Under the pieces are notes generated by a model. The model was not told the origin of the DNA, did not search any database, and saw only the letters and a list, made by a program, of their open reading frames with translations. This document shows, piece by piece, positions 3,201-45,900 of a DNA stretch of 64,000 nucleotides. The DNA is taken from assembly GCF_036588685.1 (NCBI RefSeq), contig NC_086373.1, forward strand, positions 101,742,001-101,806,000, written 5' to 3'. Source of the stretch: Mytilus trossulus (lineage: Eukaryota). Every line of letters starts with the position of its first letter. The stretch's first letter is position 1. A program made the position numbers and the translations under genes.

Positions 3201-6200
3201 ACAAGAGACCAGATGACACAGAAATTAACAACTATAGGTCACTGTTCAGCCTTCAACAATGAATTTGATTTAATTCTTATAAAGAGGTTGTAATGTTTAG
3301 AAATTCAGGTAAATATCTAAATATCAAACTAATAATGAGAGAAAATATCAAAGTTACATACCAACACTGAGAAGTGCCTCCGAGAAATCTTCTGTAAATT
3401 CTGGTACTTGTAGACGAAATAGATCATATAAAATATCCAATATTCCTTGCTGTAAAAAAATAGTACATAGTAATGCCTTAATTCAAGAATGATATCACAT
3501 TTTTTCTGATTTATAATAAAAAAAAACCCAACAAAACTCTTACTGTTCATTAATATAACAGATCATTCAACATCTCATAGATTCATGTTATTTATATTAT
3601 AGACATAAAAAATACAGGTACAAGTAAAACAATTACTAATAATGCCATATTTAAGAATGTACTAAGTTATCAAAAGCAGTAAGATAACATTTTAATAGTT
3701 ACCACTGACTGATAATAAAAGCAATAATTCTTACATGACCACAAGTGAGGTGTGGAATAAAGTGTAAAAATTGTAAAAAACTGAAAAGTCTTAATCAACT
3801 GTTAATCTATTTCATAATACAATGGCATTTTCAGTCAAAATGAATACAATTTGTTATATGTAGATAAGCAAATACAAACCCTAATTTCAGGAAAGGGAAG
3901 ATATAAAATTCCAACAATAGATTGTAAACCACTCCCATCAGGTCGACAAAATCTCAGTATCCCTATAATATAAATGCATGTTTAATCATTGACAATCTGA
4001 ATCTGAATTCACAATAAGAACAGCGACACTACTTACACCATAAAATTTGACAGAGAAACATAAAGTATTAATTGTTATTTAATATTTTTGCCTCAGCTGA
4101 ACATATTGTTTTACAAACGTGTGGTCTATATGGAAAAATATACTCCAATTTGGTTGATTTTCATCCATTAAAGCAATTAGGCATACATAAAATTGAGAAT
4201 GGAAATGGGGAATGTGTCAAAGAGACAACAACCCGACCTTAGAAAAAACAACAACAGAAGGTCACCAACAGGTCTTCAATGTAACGAAAAATTCCCACAC
4301 CCACATCTTTGCAAAAATTATTCAAAACTTCTGAACTTTCATAGTTTTGTATAAAAGTGAAATTTTCAGTATTTAATGTTATTTCTGATCCAAACAGCTA
4401 AATGCTAATTTTTCAACCATTTCACAAAGAAGAGGGTACTTGTTGTTTAAATAGTGATATAATGATGCAAATATATAGCTGTAGATGGTGAACCTTGCAT
4501 GGTTTAAGAATTGTTAAGGCAACATTTCAAAACAATAAAGGGAATAAGCACATCAATTGAAAACTATTTCTTTGGTAAATAATATATAACTTATATTTCA
4601 TAAATAACAGGCTTTTATTTGAACTTGGAATTATTTTTAATTATGGAATTAACATAATTTCTTGTGTTGGAATTTTTTTATAAATTCCATGTTTATTTTG
4701 TATTATTATGTTTTGAGCGGAGCATAACACTTTCCCCACAGTGTACTTTGTATAGATAGTGTTGTGCGCGGCACAATACATTCTATTGAAAGTGTGCTAT
4801 TGTTTTTGTAATAGAAAGTGTTGTGTGCGGCACAAAACATTATGATACAGAATAAACATGGAATTCATTAAAAATTTCTAACACAAGAAATAATACATAT
4901 TCCATAATTAAAAATAATTCCAAGTTCATATAATAGCCTGTTAAATGTGAAGTTGTCATATGTATGAATCGACCCTTCATTGTCTTTTTTCAATGCTCAG
5001 ACCATTGTTTAATTTGTTTTACAGTTTTTTAATTACAAATGCTGTATAAGTAACTTTCTGAAATAAAGTTGTAAACATGTGCACTCTTATGTCTTAAAAG
5101 ATTATTACTAACCTGGCCATGATTTCATTATAGCTATAACAGCCATCTTACTGGAGGCAAATCTATGTTCTTTATCTTCTCTACAAAAAAACAAAAAAAC
5201 CATGATATTAGGCAGAGCTAAGGGGGTAGGGGTTTCAAAGAATGACCTAATTATCAAATAAACTGTTGGTGTTTTTACTGATTCAGAAAAAACATAATAA
5301 CAGTGTCATAATGACATCATATATGCTAAATCCATTATCCTTTATTGAAAAAATTAAATTTCCTGTCAATTTGTTATTTTTTCTTTAAATACTGCTGTAT
5401 TTGAAAGTTTTGAATTTTAAGACAAAATATGCCGACTGAGAATAATTAATAACAATGTAATATTAACTTACCCAGTAGATCCATCACTTGAGTCTGCACT
5501 AAATCTATAATGACAGTCAGTGAATGGTGCTAACAATTGCTGGAAAGATACGTAAAACAACCTTATAAACAATGGAATTGTAGACATAATATAAACAATA
5601 AAACATAAATGAACTAATGAGGTACAAACAACAACAGCTTAAGATGTTAATTTGAAACTCTCAAAACTTACATTAAAGCTACAGATACTAAAGGGATAAT
5701 TGCAGTAAAATTTCTTGACAAATGATGTTAATTTAACCCCGCCACATTATTTATGTATGTGCCTGTCCCAAGTCAGGAGCCTGTAATTCAGTGGTTGTCG
5801 TTTGTTTATGTGTTACATATTTGTTTTTCGTTCATTTTTTTACATAAATAAGGCTGTTAGTTTTCTCCTGTGAATTGTTTTACATTGTCTTATCGGGGCC
5901 TTTTATAGCTGACTGTATGCGGTATGGGCTTTGCTCATTGTTGAAGACCGTACGGTGACCTATAATTGTTAATGTTTGTGTAATTTTGGTCTTTTGTGGA
6001 TAGTTGTCTCATTGGCAATCATACCACATCTTCTTTTTTATATATTAATGTTAATTTTTGGTGCATGATGATAACATGAACACTTTTATTATAATCGATA
6101 AAAAAAATGACTGATTTTGACGATTCATCTTAAATTTTTTCCAAAAATAACAGTAACAATAATTTTTTGAGAACTCTGACAAAGGATCTAATAAGGATAT

Positions 6201-9200: not shown

Positions 9201-12200
9201 CATCTTGAGCTAAATATGAAATTTTATTTCTTATTAGAGCCTAGAAATAGAAGAATGTGTCAGAGGAAAGTTAAAAGAGGCATAACTTAGAAACTATAAG
9301 TGACTCACTGTTGCAATTTGAACTCTGTAAGCTAGTATTGGCTTTAAGCAATATGTATGAGTGTCATAAAATTTGGATGACGGAAACTAAAGTTAGAGGC
9401 AGAAACGAAAATGGGACTGACAGACATTATACATGTTATATTATATTAATTTTTTTCTCTGAAATTCTGTAAAAACTGTAATTTTGCTATCTTTCATTGT
9501 CAAGTGCAAGATTTAGATCTATATAACATAAGTGTGAATCACAGTACAGTTTTAAGAAGAAATAACTTTTTTATTACAGTCCTTTTCAGTAGCCCTCAAA
9601 TGTATCAGATTTCTATTGTGTCCATGCTGGCTGTCAAAGCACAAAATATACGGAACAATCACTATATTATATACATATTGTATTTACCTATTTCACATAT
9701 CGTAGCTAATGATATTCTGACCATTCTGTCTCTTTCATGGTTGCCATCATTACCAATAGCAACCAATGGATACACTAGAGAGGAAGATAGTTTGTGAGGT
9801 GCTACATGTGCTATCTTTCTGATCAATTTAATGGCATGTATTCTTTCTACCTCATTGTCAAGACAAACATCCACTGATCTGAAAATCACATTAACAGTAA
9901 TGAGTTATAGCATAATTAACTTGTATGTAAAGCATAAATTACATAAATTTGAATAAATTCATGCATGTTAGACAATGATGAAATTAAAACTTTATAGTTT
10001 AACTAAAATGAATCTTCTTAATTGTCTTTGAAACACCCTTTCTTGGCTAATGTATCCTCAATACTAAGTCTAAAAGCAGTGGTATCCCAAGATGGAAAGA
10101 TAAGACATACAATGACATATAAGCTACAAATGCCCAACAATTTTTGTCTTTTGCCTTGTTTTAATAATTTTAATATACCAGAATAAACTAGTCCACCTTG
10201 TCTGCATATATAACAAATGAATTATAAGTTCATACATTCAGGAGAAAGAGGTGGAATCAGTGCATTTTTGCGCCTGTCCCAAGTCAGGAGCCTCTGGCCT
10301 TTGTTAGTCTTGTATTATTTTTATATAAGTTTCTTGTGTACAATTTGGAAATTAGTATGGCGTTCATTATCACTGAACTAGTATATATTTGTTTAGGGGC
10401 CAGCTGAAGGACGCCTCCGGGTGCGGGAATTTCTCGCTACATTGAAGACCTGTTGGTGACCTTCTGCTGTTGTTTTTTATTTTGGTCGGGTTGTTGTCTC
10501 TTTGACACATTCCCCATTTCCATTCTCAATTTTATTACAAAAGTTGTTTGACCCTGCTACATGGCCATACATCCAAGTTCCAGTTGTTTAGTGAGTTTGG
10601 CATTGATTGCTGACTTTAGATAATCTATGTACATGTACATGTCATTCACATCTTTCCTAAACGTTTTAGTTTTACTATTGTTGAAATCTTCATGTTAAAA
10701 TGATAAATGTTTAGATGTCTCATTTTTTATTGTGCTGTTTGGTTAATGTGGCATCAATGTATACCCTATATCTCTTTGTTCATTAATAAATCATGATTAA
10801 CATACCTGACAATCAAATAATCTATCTGTAATGCATACACCAAGTCTATAGCTTCACCATCTTGTATAAAGTACCGTAAAACTCTTAAGGTGGCTGCTCT
10901 AACTTCTTTTGCTTCATGAAACAAACTTATTCTCAAACTGAAATATCATCATCAAGAATTATCAATCAAAAGCCATGGATTCAAGACAAAAATACCTTAA
11001 TCAGAAACTATTAAAACAATAGTAAATTTACTTTCTCCATTCAGTTTAAACAAAATAACTGAGGTCTCAGAATTACTACAAATCTCTGTTTCATATCATC
11101 GAGACATAACTTAGGAATGTTATCAGTATCAATATATACAAGATACCAATGAAAAATTAATTCTGAGGCAGACCAAAAATAAAGATAGGTGTAGTACAGA
11201 ATTTTAATATAAGTTTAATCTCTTAGAAGTTAATTCATTTGTATAAATTTACATTGTGTCATAGATCATATTTATTTGTTCTTTGTATGTTTGCTTGTTT
11301 TTGTTTATATGTCATTTGATAGAGTTCAGCCATTTCAATTGATATTTTTGTGTGTCTTTCTATGTTGTGATGTTTCACTATCGTTTCAGGTTAAGGTTGG
11401 TGCCTGTTTAAATGTTTAAACCCGCTGCATTTGTTTGCACCAATCAGTCAGTTCTTTTAAAAACAGGAGTTCGCAATGTGGTGTAAATTTGGAAAAATAT
11501 TCTCTGTATTATTTTAATTTGTTTATTGAAAATATTTTATCAAATATCAATTTATTATCATATATATATGGTTGATAAAAACTAAAGAAAACTGCTTCTT
11601 AACATTTGGTTAATGATGATACCATATGGTTACCATGTACAGCTAAATACTTACCAGCTTAAAATATCTCTCTTTGAAAATCCAGTAATTTTCTCCTGCT
11701 TATATTTCTGTAGGAACTTTACAAAAGCATTTAAGTAACCCAGTTTTCTTGATTTAGAAGTCTGTATTTGTGCAATAGTATTCACTAGTATTTCCTTCAA
11801 ATTATCTGTTGGGCCTAAAATAAAATAAGATTTATTCAACTACCAATACTCATTAATAGAATAAACAAATGCTTTCTTCAAGTTATTTGCAGGTTTTTGA
11901 AACACAATCACAAGCATGACATGTAGATTATTAATGTCATCAGTCTACATATATAGGAATAAAAAACACTACATTTGTACATTTGTAATTCTTGGGTAAA
12001 TTAGATGCAGAATCATAGCTAGGGTACATTTGAAATCAAAATAAATTTGTCCTTGGAAGTCTACAATTGTTCAGTGTTTTAATTTACAGACTTAATTTGA
12101 ATGATCAATAATCTTCCAAGGGCCTTCGAGGCCAAGTGGACTAATATGTTTAACCCCGCCACATTCTGTATGTATGTGCCTGTCCCAAGTTCAGAGCCTG

Positions 12201-15178
12201 TAATTCAGTGGTTGTCGGTTTGTTTATGTGTTACATATTTGTTTTTTGTTAATTTTTTGTTCATAAATAAGGCCATTAGTTTTTTCTTTAGAATTGTTTT
12301 ACATTTTAATTTCAGGGCCTTTCTTAGTTGACTATAGGGTATGGGCTTTGCTCCTTGTTAAAGGCTGTACAGTGACCTATAGTTGTTAATTTTTGTGTCT
12401 GTTGGTCTCTTGTGGAGAGTTGTCACATTGGCAATCATACCACATCTTCTTTTTTATAAGTAGTTCATCTTCTGTATCAATAGCATTTCAACACTGAGGT
12501 TGTGACTTCAACTCCAATCTTAATTGACCAGGATTGCTAGCTTCATGGCAATTGGCTTAAACCGAAAGTAATAACTTGCCAATAACGCTGTAAGTTGCAT
12601 TAAAAAACAAAAATAAATGTGTTATCTATTTCAGATTTTGACTTTTTCATGTAATGAGTTTAGATATCTAGTAAGTGATGTTTTCTAGTGTCAATAGTTC
12701 AAATTGTATTGTCAACCTGGTACATGTATGTTAATTAGGAAACATATTGTTTTACATGCTAAACATGTGTATATGTATATATTTTCCAATTTGTATTTCT
12801 GATTTATGTTCGAAGTTCGAACTAACATCAAAGTCCCTTAATACAAACAAATTGATTGATGCAAATTACCTTAGGAAACTCCCTTGGATACTGTGACTTC
12901 ATTTTTTTTATTCATTGGATACCAATTTTTCGTGGGTTACATGGGTATAGATGAACCACAAATTCAAATGTTAAGCAAATAACATATTTTCAATAGGCTT
13001 TTATATACAAAGATTGGCAAAACCATGAAATCAAATACCCATGAAAATGCAAGTTTTCAGCAATCCACCAAAATTGATACCCACGAAAATAAATTAATCC
13101 ACATATATGCAAAAAAAAAAAAGAAAACCAACCAATTTAAATATATTCTGAACTGTACATCAAAGTAACAAAATGATTAAAATTATTTTATTTTCTGAAT
13201 TTGTTTACTTCTGTTCAAATTTTAACATATCTAGTGAAATTTATGTTATTTTCTTTGAGGAGACTTTAGAACAAACTTAATTAAAACATGATTTGAACTA
13301 ACTAAGTACTGAGTCATTAATAGTTACAAATGTTAGAGGAATGATTCTGAAAAGTTAAGTCTCCTGGGACAAATAATTGAAAAACATCATAGAAAATTTG
13401 TGCCGAAGACTTGAGTAAAGAAGGGTTGTTATATTTTATCGAATTGATATATAAGATCATGATGATATACCATCTTAAGGTGTTTATATAACACAACTTA
13501 TTTGCTATGCCCATGATGCCTATGTCTGTAGCGACATTTTGGATTTAAATGAATGTAACCTATGTATCACTGGTAAATATATTTTGTATAATTCAGTCAG
13601 GGATTACCTAGATTTGGTTTTGAAGTTTGGTTGTACCTGTAGAAAACTTTATCATAAATTAGGCTGTAACAGGCAATAGTTTTCTCAATTGAATTGTTTT
13701 ATTTGTGATTTTTGGGCCTTTAGAAGCTGACTATGCAGAATTGGCTTTGGTCATTGTTGAAGGCTGTATAGTGACCTACATTTAGTTATTTTCTGAGTCA
13801 TTTTTTCTTTTGGTAGGATTTGTGTTATTTGCAATCATACCAAATCTTCTTTTTTGTATATCTTCCTATACAAAACTCCTGGCTAACAGAAAATAAAATA
13901 AATAATGACGAGCAATATCAATTGACCCATTGCTGATGACACTGAAATAATAGGCATTCAAGGTACAAAACAGTGTATTTATTGGCATTTAGATAACACA
14001 AGACCATTACATTGTACCTAATTATTCAAAATTAAACAATGACCTGTGAGTTTTTTTTTCCAGAAAATACAGTAAAATGCAAGAGTTGATACCAGATGTG
14101 AACTGCAATCGTCTTAAAAACATTGTAGCTATGGAATGGTATAACATATGATTTTTTATGAATCATGAGCATGATAAGACTTGCATGTATATATGTACTA
14201 TGTCTTAAGTCTATTACAATACACCTTATCGCTATTTATGGGTCTCAATGGGGTCTAAGTGTGACGAAGGATTGCCAATTTTTACTATTGTGAGCACTGT
14301 GAAAACCGGAATGAAGTAGCGGGACACAAGAAATAACAAAAAAATGAGAATTACTTACGTACATAGTGTAAGCGTAATACGGGAATCTAACAAAAAAAGT
14401 TAGCAGGATCCGGGGTCAGAATCCCCTATTAAGACCACTCTTTATATTTGTCTACCATTACACAATACCGGAGATCAGACAGGTTCCCGTAAAATTCTGA
14501 CATCATGTACAATACATAATATGTGACACCACAAAGGAAAAGTGATTGTTGTATTATTTTAATACTTCAAGCGGGAAAGATTCTCAGGTCAGCCCGGTTT
14601 AGCGATAACGTGTATCAAAGTCTACACAAGCTTCCGAATTTCATTAATGAATGCACTGCCAAAGTTTACCTGCGGTCATTTTGGGGAAACTTTGTCAAAT
14701 GACATGTGGGGTAAAGATATTTGCTTTTATATGTCAATTTTTCCAGGGGAAAATGCACCAAATGGTAGGTCATGGATACTGTAAATTGTAAATTATAGGC
14801 CTGCTATGTCATGTATGTAGACAGGTCTGACAGGCAGATCTGCACAATTCAAATACACAGTAAATCAAATCTTATAAAATGACAGTAGTTGTGCAAAATT
14901 TTTCAACTGTGAGAGTATTTGTTTCCCCATAGCAAGTTGTTTTTGTTGTAATTATAAAGTTGACATTTCATAAATAACAAACCTTTGGTAAAGTCCAATC
15001 GAAAAACTTCATCGCCACTGTCATTTCGAGCTGAAATGAAAGAAAAAATACATAGTTACAAAGTTAAGGATATAATTGAAATATGTAATGTAGATAGGAT
15101 TTCATGAAAGATTTACATACATTTAAAACGCCCTGTTTTGTGTGACCGTATGCCCTGGCGAGCCCCAACGGCCGCCAT
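163..15178 (-). CDS. RICTOR: RICTOR (mTORC2 subunit), N-terminal 16 coding exons, 564 codons; gene continues beyond the left edge of the window
   Basis: Manually spliced, all GT-AG and phase-consistent: 15121-15178, 14983-15030, 11655-11814, 10806-10937, 9688-9878, 6427-6599, 5472-5539, 5113-5180, 3880-3962, 3362-3449, 2894-2984, 2366-2432, 1935-2015, 1413-1513, 634-811, 163-267. Translation MAAVGARQG...RNDSGDE...RKLGYLNAF...HEAKEVRAATLRVLRY...AIGNDGNHERDRMVR...RATILLGELLHL...WNWDLISSILK is colinear with vertebrate RICTOR as I recall it. Confidence 0.96.
430..562. repeat. ~72-bp tandem duplication (2 copies) in a RICTOR intron
   Basis: GAAAAATGAACATA...TATACACCAACATGA...GGAGGTCAAGTCAAAT occurs at 430 and 502. 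Confidence 0.8.
634..811 (-). CDS. RICTOR: RICTOR coding exon 15
   Basis: QAQKAVYYLDRFHSLKKKGVVPCSLYLDQLIQ...LYLSK. Confidence 0.92.
1413..1513 (-). CDS. RICTOR: RICTOR coding exon 14
   Basis: ASTLLPHECSYHNHCLPSLLSIASSMD. Confidence 0.93.
1935..2015 (-). CDS. RICTOR: RICTOR coding exon 13
   Basis: ALVEVIISSSTKLSIRATILLGELLHL. Confidence 0.94.
2366..2432 (-). CDS. RICTOR: RICTOR coding exon 12
   Basis: PNLVENHIALILFAWIGAGILE. Confidence 0.92.
2533..2720. mobile_element. PIF/Harbinger (Tourist-like) MITE
   Basis: 41-bp TIRs GGGCTATTCCATTTAAACATA...GGAAGGCA (1 mismatch); TTA target-site duplication at 2530-2532 and 2721-2723. Confidence 0.85.
2894..2984 (-). CDS. RICTOR: RICTOR coding exon 11
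   Basis: DPSVMKYTWRLTEGFVAEEGKSSLPHMAKIR. Confidence 0.93.
3362..3449 (-). CDS. RICTOR: RICTOR coding exon 10
   Basis: QGILDILYDLFRLQVPEFTEDFSEALLSV. Confidence 0.92.
3880..3962 (-). CDS. RICTOR: RICTOR coding exon 9
   Basis: GILRFCRPDGSGLQSIVGILYLPFPEIR. Confidence 0.92.
4605..4943. mobile_element. Foldback/MITE with long inverted arms
   Basis: ACAGGCT..TATTTGAACTTGGAATT at the left end mirrored at the right end; inverted over ~125 bp per arm; TA flanks; shorter relative at 21432-21563. Confidence 0.8.
5113..5180 (-). CDS. RICTOR: RICTOR coding exon 8
   Basis: EDKEHRFASSKMAVIAIMKSWP. Confidence 0.92.
5472..5539 (-). CDS. RICTOR: RICTOR coding exon 7
   Basis: QLLAPFTDCHYRFSADSSDGST. Confidence 0.92.
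5729..6043 (+). mobile_element. 3'-terminal fragment of the Naiad-type element (family B tail)
   Basis: Closely similar to 38958-39260; ends GGCAATCATACCACATCTTCTTTTTTATAT. Further copies at 12140-12458, 13655-13860 and 45509-45900. Confidence 0.8.
6427..6599 (-). CDS. RICTOR: RICTOR coding exon 6
   Basis: FLNPELLSLCGGISTII...PRINESLVSTILYLLNHPRTRH...DLE. Confidence 0.95.
6757..7017 (-). mobile_element. Helentron-associated (HINE/DINE-like) non-autonomous element, degenerate
   Basis: Minus strand starts TTTTTATGCTCC, has a GTCC/GTCT-type microsatellite remnant and ends CTTGTT. Confidence 0.45.
9688..9878 (-). CDS. RICTOR: RICTOR coding exon 5
   Basis: NEVERIHAIKLIRK...AIGNDGNHERDRMVRISLATICEI. 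Confidence 0.95.
10261..10535 (+). mobile_element. Short dispersed retro-repeat (family D)
   Basis: Copies at 50345-50578 (+), 4189-4303 (-) and 17409-17480 (-); ends CTTTGACACATTCCCCATTTCCATTCTCAATTTTA. Confidence 0.75.
10806..10937 (-). CDS. RICTOR: RICTOR coding exon 4
   Basis: LRISLFHEAKEVRAATLRVLRYFIQD...IDYLIVR. Confidence 0.95.
11655..11814 (-). CDS. RICTOR: RICTOR coding exon 3
   Basis: PTDNLKEIL...RKLGYLNAFVKFL; within ORF 11651-11839; GTAAGT donor. Confidence 0.93.
12140..12458 (+). mobile_element. Family B tail copy
   Basis: TTTAACCCCGCCACATT...CCTGTCCCAAGT...ATACCACATCTTC. Confidence 0.8.
14983..15030 (-). CDS. RICTOR: RICTOR coding exon 2 (RNDSGDEVFRLDFTK)
   Basis: TTCAG acceptor, GTTTGT donor; RNDSG motif. 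Confidence 0.9.
15121..15178 (-). CDS. RICTOR: RICTOR coding exon 1 (MAAVGARQGIRSHKTGRFK)
   Basis: ATG at 15178-15176 in AAT-ATG-G context; donor GTATGT. Confidence 0.85.
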
Positions 15179-22146: not shown

Positions 22147-23150
22147 ATATAAAAAAGAAGTTGTGGTATGATTGCCAATGAGACAACTATCACTAAAGAC
22201 CAAATGACACACATTAACAACTATAGGTCACCTTCAACAATGAGCAAAGCCCATACCACATAATCAGCTCTAAAAGGCTCCGATAAGACAATGTAAACAA
22301 TTCAAACAAGAAAACTAACGGCCTTATTTATGTAAAAAAATTAACAAAAAACAAATATGTAACACATACACAAACGACAACCACTGAATTTACAGGTTCC
22401 TGACTTGGGACAGGCACATACATAAATAATATGGCGGGGTTAAACATGTTAGCGGGATCTCAACCCTCCTCCTAACCTGGGACAGTGGTATAACAGTACA
22501 ACATAAGAACGTCTATAAAAATCCCTTGAAAAAGGCTTAACTCATCAGATGGACAAAAAATACAAGTGGACGTGGCCGGGTACTTATACATCCCAACACA
22601 AAACACAAAGAACAGATCTGAGAGTACTCACAGTTATCTGACAGCTAGTTCAAAGCTACCAACAACTAATAAAAAAAATCATGCATCTAAGACTAAACTA
22701 TCAATCCGTACACATCCATTATCATGTGGATTTAGTATAAAGACGTCAAAAACAGCCAGAGACAACATGAACTTGTGCAATGCCATGTTACAGATATCGA
22801 CATATTGTAGATCCATGAATATGTATATGTATATAACATACTAGTAATATTTAGTTAGCTTTTAATTTACTGATAAAATCAATATTTATACCAATAAACA
22901 CAATATTCAATGATCTTATTACAGTGTTGAGAAGGTAACCTTTTAGAATAAGTTTATTTAAGGGAGCGACAAGTTTACATGGATCATTTCTAAATTTCCG
23001 GGCACGGTTAACAACATTTCCGTAAAAATGAGGATGTGCTACCCCGTTTGAAATTACGGTTTTCTACAAGTACAACCAAACTTTAATACCAAATCTTTAT
23101 ATCTATGGAAAAATTTAGTAAAGGTTATAACTTATAAGTAATTTATGGGA
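22147..23150 (-). mobile_element. 3' ~1 kb of the family B Naiad element nested in antisense within family A
   Basis: Reverse complement aligns by eye to ~38320-39260; CGATATCC occurs near both junctions (22135, 23152), a possible TSD. Confidence 0.8.
22690..22760 (-). promoter_or_regulatory. SECIS-like element, second copy (first A of AUGA mutated to U)
   Basis: UGAC-GUCUUUAUAC-U-AAA-UCCA-loop-UGGA-U-GUGUACGGAU-UGAU. Confidence 0.65.
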
Positions 23151-24486
23151 ACGATATCCCTGGTTTAACCCTACTTTCCGCTATATAGATGATGTTCTTT
23201 CACTAAATGATTCAAAATTTAGTGACTATGTGGAACGCATCTATCCCATCGAACTAGTTATAAAGGATACTACAGATACAATTAAGTCGGCCTCATTTCC
23301 CGACTTACATCTAGAAATTGACAATGAGGGTCGGTTGAAAACAAAACTTTACGACAACAGAGATGATTTCAGCTTTCCAATTGTGAAATTTCCATTTCTA
23401 AGTAGCAACATTCCAGCAGCAGCTGCATACGGGGTATGTATCTCCCAATTGATACGATATTCCCGTGCTTGCATTTCCTATCATGGTTTTCTTGATATAG
23501 GGTTGCTGCTCACAAGGAAGCCATTAAACCAAGAGTTCCAAATGGTGAAGTTGAAAATATGCCTTCGTAAATTTTACGGACGCCATCACGAGTTGGTTGA
23601 CCGTTAATGAATAACCATTTCACAAATGATATCGGATATGTTCCGTACGTCGTAACTGCAATCCCCTTCCCTTTCATGAATGTGACCTACCGAATAAGAC
23701 TATTTACCGGATTTGTTATTACATAAGCAACACGACGGGTGCCACATATGGAGCAGGATCTGCAATCTTCATGTTCGTCAGATTCATGTCCCAATCCAAG
23801 GTTAAGCGTTTATTGATGTTACCCTGTAGCTTAGATGCTATATGCAGAAGGTCGATTATATATTTGGGTTATGCAATGATTGTAAGGCGTACATGTTTCT
23901 CTTGCAAGTTTAAGCTAACCTTGACAATTTTTTCAAGTTTCTTTAGATAAAGAAATTGTTTGTGTTTGAGTTCGTTTCTCAGATGCTATAATCTATGTCA
24001 ACTAAATTTTGTATATGGAATGTTCGTTAGTTGTCTGGTAGGTAGACTTCATCTTCATCCATTAGTCTCCATTAGCATTAGGTCAATTGTAATGTATATA
24101 TATATATATTATATTATATATAAACGAGTCTAAATTGAAAACTACGTTCAAACCTATGATTGCGTTGGATAAAAACCGCAATTTTTATACGTGTGCATGT
24201 CAAACAAATTTCGTTGTAGAAGGGTCTAAAAACAGCACAAACAACATTTTCCAAAAGACCAAAAAAGTGAAAAAGTATATTTCAACAAAACGCATTTGAC
24301 TAACAGGTCGAACAACTGATGTTCTTTAACCCTGCTGACTGCCATTGACGATTGCCAAATAAAATTGATCACAAGATGTAACAAAATGGATCTGAATATT
24401 AATTTAATACGTCACAGAAAAAAAAATTTGTAAACTTGTGGCTACGATGTTGTGCCACAAACATTCGGTGTCAATATTTCTTTAGT

Positions 24487-29804: not shown

Positions 29805-31070
29805 AAAAAGAGGGACGAAAGATACCAAAGGGACATTCAAACTCATAAATCTAAAACAAACTGCTTTTAACTAGCTGTCAGTAACTGCGAGTACTCTCAA
29901 ATCGTATTTTCTAGTTAATTCGACCTGTTGATACTGTTTATAATGCTTTTTTGTTATTTTTTATTTATATGGATCTTGTCTGTACACCAGCTTTGATTAT
30001 TTTTAATATCTTCAATTTTTCACTTATTCTTACAACATTTGTATAAACTTCAAGATTATAAAAAAACGGTTTTTTTCTAAAGTGAACATTGATTGGTTAA
30101 ATATTTCTCAGTGATGTCCTGTGTTTGAATTTGTTTGTTAGCTTTTTGGTCATGAATGTTTGTCTCTAATATTTAATTAACTGTGCATTTGTATTCAGAT
30201 ATCGCAGATCAAATTTATTCGTTCATTGTGTAATCATACGTTTTTTGATTGAGTTAAGTCTGCCAATTGATATTTTATCGTATGTTTTTCTATGTTGTGA
30301 TGTTATGCTATTGTTTCAGAAAAAGGGAGAAGGTTTGGATTCATTAAAACGTTTAATCCCGCTGCAAATGTTTGCACCTGTCCTAAGCCAGGAATCTGAT
30401 GTACAGTAGTTGTCGTTTGTTTATCTAATATATACGTGTTTCTCGTTTCTCGTTTTGTTTATATAGATTAGACCGTTGGTTTTCCCGTTTGAATGGTTTC
30501 ACACTAGTAATTTTGGGGCCCTTTATAGCTTGTTGTTCGGTGTGAGCCAAGGCTCCGGGTTGAAGGCCGTACTTTAACCTATAATGGTTTACTTTTTAAA
30601 TTGTTATTTTGATGGAGAGTTGTCTCATTGGCACTCACACCACATCTTCCTATATCTATTGACAACGCCATGGCTAAAAATGAAAAAGACAAACAGAAAA
30701 ACAATAGTACACATTACACAACATAAAAAACTAAACAATAAACAATACGAACCCCACCAAAAAACAAGGCGTGATCTCAGGTGCTCCTGAAGGGTAAGCA
30801 GATCCTGCTCCACATGTGGCACCCGTCGTGTTGCTTATGTGATAAAAAATCCGGTAAATAGTCTAATTCGGTAGGTCATATTCATGAAAGGGAAGGAGAT
30901 TGTAGTTACGATGTAAGGAACATATCCCATATCATTTGTGAAACGGTTATTCCATAACGGTCAACCAACTCGTGATGGCGTCCGTAAAACTTACGAAGGG
31001 ATGATTTCAACTTCACCCTTAATTTTGGAACTCTTGGTTAAATAGTTTCCTTGTGAGCAGCAACCCTCTA
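29805..31070 (-). mobile_element. Family A Penelope-like 3' end (RT C-terminus plus tail), split by the family C insertion
   Basis: 30800-31070 is the reverse complement of ~23495-23765; the tail continues at 29805-29863; another tail copy lies at 16460-16680. Confidence 0.75.
29864..30659 (+). mobile_element. Family C retro-repeat inserted into family A
   Basis: Interrupts host AAACAAACTG|ACAACGCC; ends CACCACATCTTCCTATATCTAT; partial copies at 32020-32218, 58586-58830 and 11320-11440. Confidence 0.75.
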
Positions 31071-32546: not shown

Positions 32547-33694
32547 CAGTCTGTCCGTCCGTCCGTCCGTCTGTCCGTCGTACCGTCTGTCCGTCCGTCC
32601 GTCCGTAACACTTTAACTTTGTGTCCGCTCCATATCTAGAAAACCATTATGATTTCATACTTTATACTTTACATGTTTATTAACCACCACCAGAGGCCGT
32701 GTCATGATGTATGTACAACTTTCTAGGTCAAAGGTCATGGTAAAAATACTTTGGTTTCAGTTGACAACCCTGTGTCCTGTGGTGATGATCGTGTCCGCTC
32801 TATATCTTGAGAACCCTTATGATTTCAAAGTTTATACTTGATATCCATTTTAACCAACACCAGAGGGTGTGTCATGATGTATGTACAACTTCCTAGGTCA
32901 AAGGTCAAGGTAAAAAAACCTTTGGTTTTAGTTGACAACCCTGTGTCCTGAGTTGAAGATTGTGTCCGCTCTATATCTTGGGAACTGTTTTGATTTCAAA
33001 TATTATACTTGACATCCATTTAAACCAACACCAGAGGGTGTGTCATGATGTATGTACAACTTCCTAGGTCAAGGTCAAAAACTTTGGTTTCAGTTGACAA
33101 CCCCGTGTCCTGTGATGAAGATCGTGTCCGCTACATATCTAGATAACCGTTCTGATTTTATACTTAATACTTAACATGTTTATTAACCAGCACCAGAGGG
33201 TGTGTCATGATGTATGTACAACTGCCTAGGTCAAAGGTCAAGGTCAAAAACTTTGGTTTCAGTTGATAGCCCTGTGTCCTGTGGTAAAGATCGTGTCCGC
33301 TCCATATCTGGATAACCTTTATGATTTCAAAGTTTATACTTGACATCCATTTTAACCACCATCAGAGGGCGTGTCATGATGTATGTACAACTTCCTAGGT
33401 CAAAGGTCAAGGTAAAAAAAACTTTGGTTTTAGTTGACAACCCTGTGTCCTGAGTTGAAGATTGTGTCCGCTCTATATCTTGGGAACCATTTTGATTTCA
33501 AATATTATACTTGACATCCATTTTAACCAACACCAGAGGGTGTGTCATGATGTATGTACAATTTTCTAGGTCAAAGGTCTGTTTGTCTGTTGGTCTGTCC
33601 ATCGCTTACAATTTTGATTCACACTATATTTATTTTCCCAACGTTATTGACAGCGGGGCCCACAGAGATGGCTTCCATCTCAATGATATCTAGT
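32547..33694 (+). mobile_element. Helentron-associated non-autonomous element (HINE/pearl/MgE-like) carrying a tandem array
   Basis: Subterminal IRs GGGCCCCG / CGGGGCCC, 5' hairpin CCGACT..AGTCGG, (GTCC)n microsatellite, central repeats, 3' hairpin GAGATGG-CTT-CCATCTC, CTAGT end. Confidence 0.8.
32620..33578 (+). repeat. ~170-bp satellite array, ~5.6 units
   Basis: TGTCATGATGTATGTACAA at ~32700, 32870, 33041, 33203, 33372 and 33543. Confidence 0.9.
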
Positions 33695-35712: not shown

Positions 35713-38700
35713 ATGGAAAGAAAACACTTAACACCAATCCTTCAAGGATATTCAACCTCGGTCAATCTAAATTCCCCATATAAATTTAGTACTTTTTATA
35801 ATTTGGTTAAAGGTGGCAATGCTGCAGCAGACAGATTATTCGATAAAAATGCACGTGGATATTCACGAATACTTCCGTGCAATGCCAGAAAATGACGAAC
35901 CTGTTCTAGATTACCTTTTGATAATACCATAAGGTCAACAGTGAACGGTAGAGCTTTTTCGCTTTCCGTTTCCTGCGACATTACATGAAAAACACAAAGC
36001 CTCATTTAACTAGCTACATGAACATAGCAAAAGCGTGGTATACAATATGTAGGACAAACAGGACGGGAGTTTTTTTAAATGAACACAGGAACATCTATAC
36101 CGCTTCTCCGAAAACCTAAGAAATTCAAAAGTATAATCTATCAACATTTAGGTAAACACAACCACAATATCAAATTTATTAGATTTCAACCGCTCGAAAA
36201 CCGGTTCAGAAACAAAAAGGGCAATCGCCTAAACAATTTGAAGATTCCAGTAAAACTATCGATCTGTCTTGGATTAAGCGTCTTCAAAAGCTTATTCCCA
36301 GGATCTAAATGACAATATACTTGGGCAAGGGAACATATTTACTATTTTTCTATTGATATCATGAATGTTATTGATAAAAAAACATCGAAATAATAGGTCT
36401 CATGGGAAACGTATCAATCGAAATCAACGAGTTAAACATCTTATATATTATACACTTGTTAATCTCCTATCTATATTTAAAAACAATGGAAGGCAATAGT
36501 TGTTATGTAAACTGGGTCAAATACCCATTAGTAAATTACACGATATTTTCAAAGAGTGTGACACTATCTCTTTCTTCAGCCCACTGTATGAATATTCTCG
36601 TATAATTACATTTTTTTGCCACCATAGGCTGTTCACGCGTATCGACAAACCTGAAGATCATAAACGTCATTGTGTGAAAATTAAATATATGAGCAGAGGT
36701 ATTAATTTTATCTACTTATCTTGTATATTTAATGACTCTACCGTTCAAAACTTTATACTTCCCTATTTTGATTACATAGTACCACCTAGAATTAACTGTA
36801 AATCGTCGAAGTTTAGATATGTTCCCTATAGCCATGTTATTACAGGGGAACTCAATATCGTCCAGGACAAAGAGGTTAAAAACTTTTTGAAAAAAGGACC
36901 TAAATATCGTCTTCCATCTAAAATAGATTGGAAAGAGTGTCGTCAAGTCACCAAAGATGCTCTTTCCTCGTTTTGAAAAAGCGGTGTAAACGGGAAAAAT
37001 CTGATAAAAAACTCTTGATTCTTAAAATAAATGTATGAATGTGATAGAGAATATAACCTTTTAAAAAAAAATTAGAAGTAAATAATAAAGTATATAATAC
37101 ACCTATTTCCAGAATACGAAATAAACGTCAAGAACTTTCAAAGCGGTTTGTGTTTTTACCGACCGACAAAGCAGCCAACAATGTGATGGTGATATGCCGT
37201 AAATACTACAAGGACGTTCTTAAGAATGAAATTTTAAATTTATCTACATTCAAGATCATCTGCCCCACAGAGAGTCATATAGTAAACAAACATATTACAA
37301 CCACATCAAAGCCCCAGGCTTCTTCTGAACATTTGGAGGTCCCTTCTATGTATATGCTACCTAAATTACACCAAAAAACATTTAAATATCATTTCATCTC
37401 GGCCTCTAGTTAGTGTTCTACCACTTATCTTTCAGTGTGTTTATCAAGTTCATAAACTTCTATTAAAGAGTTTATCATCGACTTCTGTAATAAAATATAT
37501 GAACATAGTGGTATGAACTATTTTTGGAGTGTACCAATTCTTTGGGTTCCTTTTTTAGATAAATTACGTGCTTTTGATGGTCTTTTTGATTCTGTTGACA
37601 GTTTGGATTTTTCTCCTCTTTACACTACACTTCCATACTTGGTAAAGCTGAATGCAAATAGTATATTTGCTGCAACTAATGTCAACCCTTCTTCTCTAAT
37701 GAGAAAGGTAAATATGCTAGATATACTTACTAGAGGTGTGATGAGATGATTGAAGCTGTTAATTTTCTACTTGATAATATTTATGTACGTTTCGGCAAAA
37801 AAGTTTATCGACAGGGTACTAATTGTGCCCCTTTCATAGCGGATATGTTTTTGTACTGTTACAAATCACAGTTTATGACTTAACTCGAGAAAGACTCGTT
37901 GAAATTGCAATTAATTGATAAATTCAACAACACTTACCGTTATCTTGATGACATTTTTTCGTTAAATAATCAAGAATTTTCTCAATATACTACTGAAATT
38001 TACCCCCAAGGAACTTAATTTAAATAAATCAAATTTATACGTTAATAACAGTCCTTTCCTGGATTTAGATATTTCGGTTTTAAACGAGAAACTCCACACT
38101 AAGATTTACGACAAAAGGGACGTTTGTTCGTTCTCTATTGTTAATTTTCCATTTTTCGATGTTGATGTTTCTTTGGCACAATCTTACGGTGTTTATATTT
38201 CACAATTCGTTCGCTATGCCCGTGTCTGTTGTTATGTTTTTTGATTTTAACGAACGCAATCTATGTATTACTGGTAAATTATTTAACCAGGTGTATCGCT
38301 ACCACAAATTTATTTAAACCTTTACTAAATTTTTCCATAGATATAAATATTTGGTTTTGAAATTGTAGGTTGTTCCTGTACATAACTTATTTCAAACAGG
38401 ATATAACATCCTAATTTTTACGGAAATGTTGTTAACCGTGCCCGGAAATTTAGAAATGATCCTTGTAAACTTATCGCTCCTTAAAATAAACTTATTCTAA
38501 AATGTAACTAATTCAACACTGTAATAAGATTATTAAATATTGTTTTTATCGGTATAAATATTGATTTTGTTATCAGGAAATTAATAGCAAACATCAATAT
38601 TACTAGTATGTTATACACATAAACACATTCATGGATCTACAATCTGTCGATACCTGTAACTTGTCATTGCACAATGTCATGTTTTCTCTGACTGTTTATG

Positions 38701-39260
38701 ACGCCTTTACATTAAATCAATTGGATGTTTGATGTGTACGGATTGATTGTTGAGTCTTAGATAAATGATTTGTTTGTCTACTCTCAGATCTGTTCCTAGT
38801 GTCTTTTTGTTGTCGGGATGTACAAGTACCCGGCCACGTCTAATTTGAGTCCATCTGATGAGCTAAGCCTTTTTCAACTGATTTTTATAGTTGTTCTTAT
38901 GTTGTACTGTTATACCACTGTCCCAGGTTAGGGGGAGGGTTGTAATACCGCTAACAAGTTTAACACCGCCACAGTTTTTATGTATGTGTCTGTCCCAAGT
39001 CAGGAGGCTGTAATTCAGTGGTTGTCGTTTGTTTATGTGTTCATATTTCGTTCATGTTTGATATAAATAAGGTCGATAGTTTTTTCGTTTGAATTGTTTT
39101 ACATTGCCATATCGCGTCCTTTTATAGCTGACTATGCGGTATAGGCTTTGCTCATGGTTGAAGGCCGTAAGATGACCTATAGTTGTTAATGTATGTGTCA
39201 TTTTGGTCTCTTGTGGACAGTTATCTCATTGGCAATCATACCAAATCTTCTTTTTTATAT
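35713..39260 (+). mobile_element. Decayed, near full-length Naiad-type Penelope-like retrotransposon (family B): N-terminal GIY-YIG endonuclease, then RT; putatively selenoprotein-encoding
   Basis: From ATG 35713: CNARK*RTC Zn motif, LI*LAT*..GIQYVGQTGR, QEH, IYQH..H..QPLE, WIKRLQ..LND (EN); NCKSSKF..HVITGEL linker; KGPKYR, PTDKAANN, LPKLH..FIS, DFSPLYTTLP, GTNCAP, YRYLDD, KIYDKRD, SYGVYISQFVRYARVC (RT); many frameshifts; 3' UTR to 39260. Confidence 0.88.
38688..38760 (+). promoter_or_regulatory. Type-II SECIS-like element in the 3' UTR of the Naiad element
   Basis: AUGA 38698-38701, 12-nt spacer, AAA 38714-38716, apical mini-stem, complementary 3' arm GUGUACGGAU, UGAU 38744-38747. Confidence 0.72.
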
Positions 39261-45508: not shown

Positions 45509-45900
45509 ATTGTATAGTTCGTTCTTATGTTGTACTGTTATACCACTGTCCCAGGTTAGTGGGAGGGTTCGGATCCCGCTAACATTTGTAATCCCGCCAC
45601 ATTATGTATGTAAGTGCCTGTCCCAAGTCATGAGCCTGCTATTCAGTGGTTGTCGTTTGTTTATTGTTACATATTTGTTTTCGTTCATTTTTTTGTACAT
45701 AAATTAGGCCGTAAGTTTTCTCGTTTGAATTGTTTTACATTGTCATTTCGGGGCCTTTTATAGCTTACTATGCGGTATGGGCTTTGCTCATCGTTGAAGT
45801 TGCGGTACGGTGACCTACAGATGTTAAACTTTCTGTGTCATTCTAGTCACTTGTGGACAGTTGACTCATTGGCAAACATACCACATCTTCTTTTTTATAT
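45509..45900 (+). mobile_element. Family B tail copy
   Basis: Aligns by eye to 38885-39260. Confidence 0.8.

Follow-up and report, generated by a model that had tools for sequence, protein, structure and literature searches.

Results

A decayed Naiad copy followed by a SECIS-like stem-loop

The stretch of DNA analysed here, a window of 64,000 nucleotides from the Mytilus trossulus genome (GCF_036588685.1, contig NC_086373.1, positions 101,742,001 to 101,806,000), contains on its forward strand remains that we assign to a Naiad retrotransposon, a Penelope-like element (PLE) with an N-terminal GIY-YIG endonuclease. In the 3′ untranslated region (UTR) of its open reading frame (ORF) lies a stem-loop with the layout of a selenocysteine insertion sequence (SECIS) element (Table 1). 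The ORF was located by tblastn with the ORF of an intact relative (locus L036) carrying X at each TGA, which matched the window in five pieces from 35815 to 38592 (frames 1, 2, 1, 0 and 1; 49–71% identity). The window ORF has at least four frame changes and about 25 in-frame TAA or TAG codons, and it can be recognised by its N-terminal GIY-YIG endonuclease, KR-rich block, CxC, GxKY (GPKY) and DKA (TDKA) motifs and the YRYLDD motif of its reverse transcriptase (RT). Its end, as defined by homology to intact relatives, falls at about 38592–38594, and the stem-loop starts about 96 nt later on the same strand. This agrees with the initial annotation of this DNA, made from the letters alone, which had placed the stem-loop about 100 nt downstream of, and in the 3′ UTR of, an ORF with in-frame TGA codons; TGA is indeed found at three canonical sites of an ORF that is otherwise badly decayed.

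Table 1 Features of the Naiad copies in the window (positions of the window; site numbers are codons of the intact relative).
Feature	Position	Strand	Basis or remark
Decayed Naiad (Penelope-like) ORF	35713..38594	+	tblastn with intact relative; ATG at 35713
TGA, site 54: second Cys of C-x4-C-x2-C finger	35893..35895	+	alignment to intact relative
TGA, site 85: Cys preceding GIY-YIG motif	35986..35988	+	alignment to intact relative
TGA, site 96: first Cys of CCHH finger inside GIY-YIG core	36019..36021	+	alignment to intact relative
TGC (Cys), site 521: 8 residues after DKA	37195..37197	+	alignment, tree
SECIS element (relic), whole	38690..38756	+	direct reading, Rfam SECIS_1, covariation, family covariance model
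Outer helix I, GACU/AGUC	38690–38693/38753–38756	+	direct reading
5′ core AUGA	38698–38701	+	direct reading
Helix II, 10 positions, 5′ arm/3′ arm	38703–38712/38734–38743	+	
Apical AAA	38714–38716	+	exactly 12 nt after AUGA
Mini-stem UCAA/UUGA, 4 bp, 8-nt loop	38717–38720/38729–38732	+	
3′ core UGAU	38744–38747	+	
Remaining 3′ UTR and element tail	38757..39260	+	self-BLAST; last ~390 nt recur often in the window as 5′-truncated copies
Second copy, 5′-truncated, 3′ ~1 kb	22147..23168	-	80% identity; matches 38282–39260 only
SECIS homologue of second copy	22682–22763	-	91 bits with family covariance model

Direct reading of the stem-loop confirmed the order of AUGA, 12 nt, AAA, mini-stem, complementary arm and UGAU that had first drawn attention to it. 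The core expected of a eukaryotic SECIS, (A/G)UGA and GA that can pair as the non-Watson-Crick quartet, is present in the window copy, and 8 of the 10 positions of helix II are standard pairs, compared with 9–10 in most relatives. The label 'type II' in the initial annotation would rest on the foldable mini-stem of 3–5 bp. The full Rfam SECIS_1 model (RF00031, positions 1–64) aligned to the whole element with 22.5 bits (E = 0.053 for 401 nt and 4227 families, or about 0.002 when rescaled by our own arithmetic to one family and the 64-kb window). As this lies below the gathering cut-off of 35 bits, an Rfam scan of the whole window at the gathering threshold was blank.

On its sequence, the window copy is evidently an old, dead Naiad insertion whose ORF has been destroyed. 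Because nothing is left to recode in cis, it cannot use its own SECIS, which would be a molecular fossil whose link to a UGA-bearing ORF is historical. The TGC at the eighth residue after DKA (DKA+8) is the only Cys at this site in the clade of elements with selenocysteine (Sec) codons described below, the other members examined all having TGA, and it fits decay after the death of the element.

Intact relatives carry TGA at fixed cysteine positions

The window copy is one of a very large family. In the 1.3-Gb genome, a 321-nt query around the stem-loop returned more than 4500 first-look candidates for the window's own subfamily, a query with a piece of the ORF more than 4000, and a query for a further subfamily, C, more than 1000. 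The fetched copies sort into three subfamilies, A, B and C. Every fetched copy of A, the subfamily of the window copy, is decayed. Copies of B are 99–100% identical and many of C are 99% identical (over 140–161 nt), so these two subfamilies have been active recently.

Subfamily B copies such as L036 and L048 hold frames of about 1000 codons without TAA or TAG when only these two codons are read as stops. The TGA codons of L036 stand at 54, 85, 96, 383 and 521, with a fixed spacing of 31, 11, 287 and 138 codons; site 383 is the first Cys of CxC, and the other four are the cysteine positions and the DKA+8 position given in Table 1. Read with U at TGA, the motifs of this ORF are C-x4-U-x2-C, IY...U-x4-C...YVGQT, a KR-rich run, UDC, GPKY and PADKA. 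Subfamily C has TGT or TGC at site 383, a position at which the window copy aligns ambiguously. The stem-loop follows the UAA stop in all three subfamilies, at a distance of about 96 nt in A, 145 nt in B and 50–60 nt in C.

Naiads are diagnosed by a GIY-YIG domain N-terminal to the RT, two Cys inside the GIY-YIG core (CCHH), an upstream CX2-5CxxC finger, a KR-rich block, CxC, GxKF/Y and DKA instead of DKG, and structurally by partial tandems (the pseudo-LTR arrangement; LTR, long terminal repeat), 5′ truncation, a body of 3.4–4.4 kb and the lack of a canonical hammerhead (PMC8557442). Partial tandems and 5′ truncation were both found here, and 38500–38900 gave no canonical hammerhead match. 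L032 and L036 each contain subfamily B units in a partial head-to-tail tandem, 4445–4449 bp apart, the former with two sets of five TGAs and the latter with two SECIS copies, in the pseudo-LTR arrangement typical of PLEs. Pfam returned no RT or GIY-YIG match for six ORF pieces of the window and three pieces of the intact relative, and the assignment to Naiad therefore rests on the motifs named in PMC8557442 and on structure. For the RT, a YRYLDD motif was seen together with 2839 homologues at E ≤ 1e-10, all unnamed, but there was no Pfam RVT match, and a sequence search of PDB gave no match.

As regards the host machinery, the genome has two tRNA-Sec(TCA) genes (77–80 bits), confirmed by ARAGORN. 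Contigs from RNA libraries (four runs of three studies) covered 26–29 of 30 bins of a B copy, some of them bridging the stop codon and the SECIS, and showed no differences at the five TGA codons among the matches listed.

Conservation and covariation of the stem-loop

We aligned 43 distinct copies from the three subfamilies on a structure of 18 pairs. Paired cells made up 91.4% of this structure, against 26–44% when the 3′ partners were slid by 1–3 columns, and changes on both sides were seen in 11 of the 18 pairs. The covariation score was 0.371, compared with 0.04–0.13 in the slid controls, and none of 500 shuffles reached the observed score. RNAalifold independently recovered helix I and, of helix II, the lower half. 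When the majority bases of the subfamilies were compared, the core columns (AUGA, AAA, GAU) were identical in 10 of 10 cases and the remaining columns in 22 of 63 (Fisher p = 1e-4). Covariation across copies and a core better conserved than its surroundings had both been proposed in the initial annotation as checks of its SECIS reading, and both came out in its favour.

The third check proposed there, a covariance-model search, also spoke for a SECIS: the window copy is sub-threshold, but it aligns to the full model, its sister copies in subfamily A score 26–30 bits and the copies of subfamily C 27–33 bits, and relatives outside this genome pass the cut-off (see below). A genome-wide SECIS_1 scan produced nine hits above the cut-off, among them C7:83680481–83680545 and C11:5234697–5234761; when the SECIS of subfamily C was used as a DNA query, it found near-identical copies only, none overlapping these nine.

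A hairpin of the form AUGA...GA could also arise by chance in AT-rich DNA and be meaningless, as might be suspected from the folding energy of the single sequence, which is unremarkable (z = -0.5), and from the approximately 40 matches at 22.5 bits that our scaling of E-values leads us to expect in a 1.3-Gb genome. The unremarkable energy is itself expected, since the key pairs of the motif are non-Watson-Crick. Moreover, the hairpin occupies the homologous place in thousands of copies, with compensatory helix changes across three subfamilies. Together, the covariation, the conservation of the core columns and the comparison of 20 sequences described below refute chance, to which we attach a negligible probability.

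Within subfamily A, divergence of the core (3.1%) was not clearly different from that of the flanks (5–5.7%), and a core decaying nearly like its flanks is what is expected of dead, neutrally decaying copies. This bears on whether the relic SECIS could have been co-opted by a host transcript, for instance that of a gene with UGA in frame and the relic in its 3′ UTR, 5′-truncated SECIS-carrying Naiad insertions having been raised as a route to new selenoproteins (Craig et al., PMC8557442). In the window, however, there is no sign of a host gene around the relic, an additional C·A mismatch flanks the core in its helix II, and subfamily A decays as neutral copies do, so we regard co-option as extremely unlikely.

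SECIS elements accompany Sec-type lineages outside this genome

With a profile of the C-terminal 482 residues we collected 100 external loci (L060–L159), drawn from contigs of marine metagenomes and from contaminants of bacterial metagenome-assembled genomes, several of them bivalve symbionts. With few exceptions, all five sites are TGA, TGT or TGC in these loci, in mosaics that run from CCCCC through CCCCU, CUCCU, CUUCU and CUUUU to UUUUU. In this ORF family TGA is found only at Cys-equivalent positions, which supports the reading of the stem-loop as a SECIS.

We applied a strict SECIS descriptor, which asked for (A/G)UGA, 10–13 nt, AA, no more than two mismatches in helix II, GA and a helix I of 4 bp or longer. 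It detected a SECIS downstream of the stop in 11 Sec-type loci and gave no hit in all-Cys loci or on the antisense strand. Rfam SECIS_1 matched 10 of 15 Sec-type loci missed by the descriptor, in elements that overlap the stop or start within a few nucleotides of it, and in L060/L061 the match reached 42.1–42.8 bits, above the cut-off. No SECIS_1 match at E ≤ 10 was found in 19 Cys-type loci (68.6 kb), 11 of which have Cys at every site seen. Where at least four sites were observed, a SECIS was present in 15 of 19 Sec-type loci and in none of 11 all-Cys loci.

The 20 SECIS sequences compared represent at least 14 lineages, namely the three subfamilies of this genome and at least 11 external ones. 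All have (A/G)UGA, AAA and NGA, the spacing from AUGA to AAA is 11–13 nt (12 in 18 of the 20), and each position of helix II shows 4–7 standard pair types. In several external lineages the SECIS starts 1–20 nt from the stop.

Such a structure might serve another purpose in the 3′ UTR, for example template recognition by the element's own RT in target-primed reverse transcription, its SECIS look being incidental. On either side of the stem-loop, other stretches of the 3′ UTR are likewise kept from one subfamily to the next and point to further constrained signals, and the Rfam scores within this genome are sub-threshold. The invariant parts, however, are exactly those of a SECIS core (AUGA, AAA, GA) at the canonical 12-nt spacing, the structure is confined to lineages whose ORFs contain in-frame TGA, being absent from the 19 Cys-type relatives, which must likewise be reverse-transcribed, and some relatives pass the SECIS_1 cut-off. 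We therefore find a use other than as a SECIS very unlikely.

A quick maximum-likelihood tree of 41 rows and 419 RT columns, from which the five sites were excluded, placed all SECIS/Sec lineages in one clade (100% support in the Shimodaira–Hasegawa-like approximate likelihood ratio test) inside an all-Cys grade, with the window copy grouped with subfamily A, next to B. Leaving out the dead window copy, the minimum number of state changes was 1 at DKA+8 and 2, 2, 3 and 6 at sites 54, 85, 96 and 383, respectively, that is, at least 14 TGA/TGY switches over the five sites; some of the metagenome contigs in these counts may be dead copies.

These switches also bear on how the TGAs are read. A near-cognate or suppressor tRNA might put in Trp or Cys in place of selenocysteine, or all the elements might be inactive, with TGAs that are no more than inherited nonsense mutations. 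Some database homologues do have Trp at two of the sites: P0059, P0064, P0074, P0080 and P0091 at DKA+8, and three of them (P0064, P0080, P0091) at the first CxC cysteine as well. Their probable source is a metagenome annotation pipeline that applied genetic code 4 to TGA. Many other database homologues are fragments of about 430–490 residues that begin just after DKA+8, the last TGA. Against these readings stand the restriction of TGA to positions where relatives have Cys, at five separate sites with repeated switching, the long frames without TAA or TAG, the many near-identical copies, the co-occurrence of the SECIS and the presence of tRNA-Sec. We accordingly assign this alternative a very low probability.

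Other features of the window and of related loci

The second Naiad copy of the window, on the reverse strand, had been described as differing in sequence while keeping the pairing. Its pairing is indeed kept, in 9 of 10 positions of helix II and in the mini-stem UCCA/UGGA; its 5′ core, however, is mutated to UUGA (22749–22746) in place of AUGA and is therefore broken, and the element has no Rfam match. A search of the window and of the locus flanks with the family covariance model turned up no additional SECIS variants.

About 100 nt downstream of the SECIS, subfamily A has a conserved CUGAUGAG box (38856–38863 in the window copy), which is also present in L031, L040–L042, L046 and the second window copy. 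The box resembles the core box of a hammerhead, a reading that we rejected as Rfam gave no hammerhead match in the region searched. Type I hammerhead matches of 33 bits (cut-off 34) were seen elsewhere, at L004:623–666, L014:3225–3268 and 2806–2848, and L019:1196–1239. They lie in DNA flanking Naiad copies, and the genome thus seems to harbour canonical hammerhead-bearing PLEs or retrozymes. Among the external loci, L157:3490–3546, on a metagenome contig, has a type-P5 twister match (35.3 bits, cut-off 37.6) about 150 nt past the stop codon of a distant PLE-like ORF that is all-Cys, and L115:4555–4618 a weak twister-P1 match; to our knowledge, a twister in the 3′ region of a PLE would be unusual.

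Many copies of the last 300–390 nt or so of the subfamily A element are scattered over the window, 67–87% identical to 38875–39260 (5732–6049, 12141–12458, 13676–13859, 30264–30660, 45510–45900 and others); they are probably severely 5′-truncated insertions without a SECIS. Just upstream of the Naiad copy lies a tandem array (32621–33579) whose units repeat every 170 bp or so and are 83–93% identical.

With respect to tRNA-like sequences, C10:63843916–63855579 and 64461689–64492367 are long tandem arrays with a period of about 891–900 bp and at least 50 units, each unit being a tRNA-like gene that scores 45.9 bits with the tRNA-Sec model. At the neighbouring locus L059, ARAGORN calls tRNA-Cys(GCA) and tRNA-Ser(GCT).

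Discussion

The stem-loop is very probably the SECIS of a selenoprotein-coding Naiad retrotransposon, of which the window holds an old and dead copy. Judged by their ORFs and 3′ UTRs, active members of the family would produce one mRNA with an ORF of about 1000 codons and up to five UGAs, at zinc-finger and CxC cysteines and at DKA+8, and a single SECIS 50–145 nt past the UAA stop would serve all the UGAs of that mRNA. From the established eukaryotic pathway we infer that SBP2 would bind the AUGA/GA kink-turn, and that eEFSec with Sec-tRNA would then be recruited and delivered to the UGA. The UGAs would be read as selenocysteine, giving a full-length endonuclease–RT protein. In such a message the UGAs, five at most, would be distributed over about 1.4 kb and lie 1.6–3 kb upstream of the one SECIS that they would depend on.

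Several observations weigh against this interpretation. Not only the window copy (22.5 against 35 bits) but all copies tested in this genome fall below the Rfam gathering cut-off (22.5–33 bits), and subfamily B gave no SECIS_1 match at E ≤ 1. Five Sec-type external loci (L090, L106, L114, L115 and L127) had no SECIS match. As the Sec lineages form a single clade, their association with the SECIS amounts to one phylogenetic event and not to many independent confirmations. Lastly, the RNA-library contigs are possibly DNA carry-over of a repeat with several thousand copies, and lend weak support.

A possible history, which we put forward tentatively, is that a SECIS and a first Sec, at DKA+8, were gained jointly by a Naiad clade that probably belongs to marine bivalves. 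Four structural cysteines (two in endonuclease fingers, one before GIY-YIG and one in CxC) would later have alternated repeatedly with Sec, with at least 13 further switches on the 41-taxon tree. Such a history would have produced active transposons that need up to five processive UGA recodings, and whose thousands of dispersed 3′ ends seed the genome with SECIS elements able to found host selenoproteins.

Selenoprotein-coding transposons have so far been the subject of one paper covering four species, to which this genome adds at least three subfamilies and thousands of copies. Taken together with the metagenome relatives, they indicate that, once a SECIS is present, Cys codons change into UGA, and UGA back into Cys codons, at several sites, and the Naiad mosaic may be regarded as a natural experiment on the origin of selenoproteins and on the tolerance of multi-UGA messages. 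There are also practical consequences: gene callers break Naiad ORFs at each TGA, many of the database homologues are the fragments mentioned above, and genome-wide SECIS scans in such species would be swamped by transposon copies.

Comparison with known systems

Selenoprotein Naiads with a SECIS have been described from clams (Naiad_Scon, Naiad_Mmer) and spiders (Naiad_Sdum, Naiad_Smim) by Craig, Yushenova, Rodriguez and Arkhipova (2021, PMC8557442), and the novelty implied by the initial annotation was thus too high; our literature searches found no later report of selenoprotein Naiads. The published elements have 3–4 UGAs and a type I SECIS that lies 1–21 nt after the stop or overlaps it, and in the clam Naiads the Sec sites are the Cys before GIY-YIG, the first CCHH Cys and DKA+8 (PMC8557442). 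The elements of M. trossulus resemble them in having an N-terminal GIY-YIG and an RT, one SECIS in the 3′ UTR, a high copy number and frequent 5′ truncation, and share with the clam Naiads the UGAs at sites 85, 96 and 521. They differ in having up to five UGAs where the published descriptions give three or four: a UGA at site 54 is seen in one spider family, and one at site 383, the first CxC Cys, is unreported in PMC8557442. Their SECIS also stands farther from the stop, by about 50–145 nt, and has a foldable apical mini-stem. The elements described here are a further example of the published phenomenon, with five Sec sites, and the breadth of the Sec/Cys mosaic is their most notable aspect.

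With the SECIS of Rfam family RF00031 the stem-loops of this genome share the AUGA/GA quartet, a helix II of 10 bp, the unpaired AAA 12 nt after the core, helix I and the location in a 3′ UTR. They differ from it in their AT-rich helices, G·U pairs and one internal mismatch, which account for the scores below the cut-off, and in serving the multi-UGA ORF of a transposon and not a host redox enzyme.

Vertebrate Selenoprotein P uses two SECIS elements, whereas one was found per Naiad element. The two systems are alike in that several UGAs per ORF would be decoded with the help of the 3′ UTR, but in Naiads Sec would replace metal-binding or structural cysteines of the endonuclease and RT, and there is no selenium-transport tail. 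Selenoprotein P has up to 132 UGAs in molluscs, as Baclaocos et al. (2019) are cited in PMC8557442; molluscs seem particularly permissive for multi-UGA recoding.

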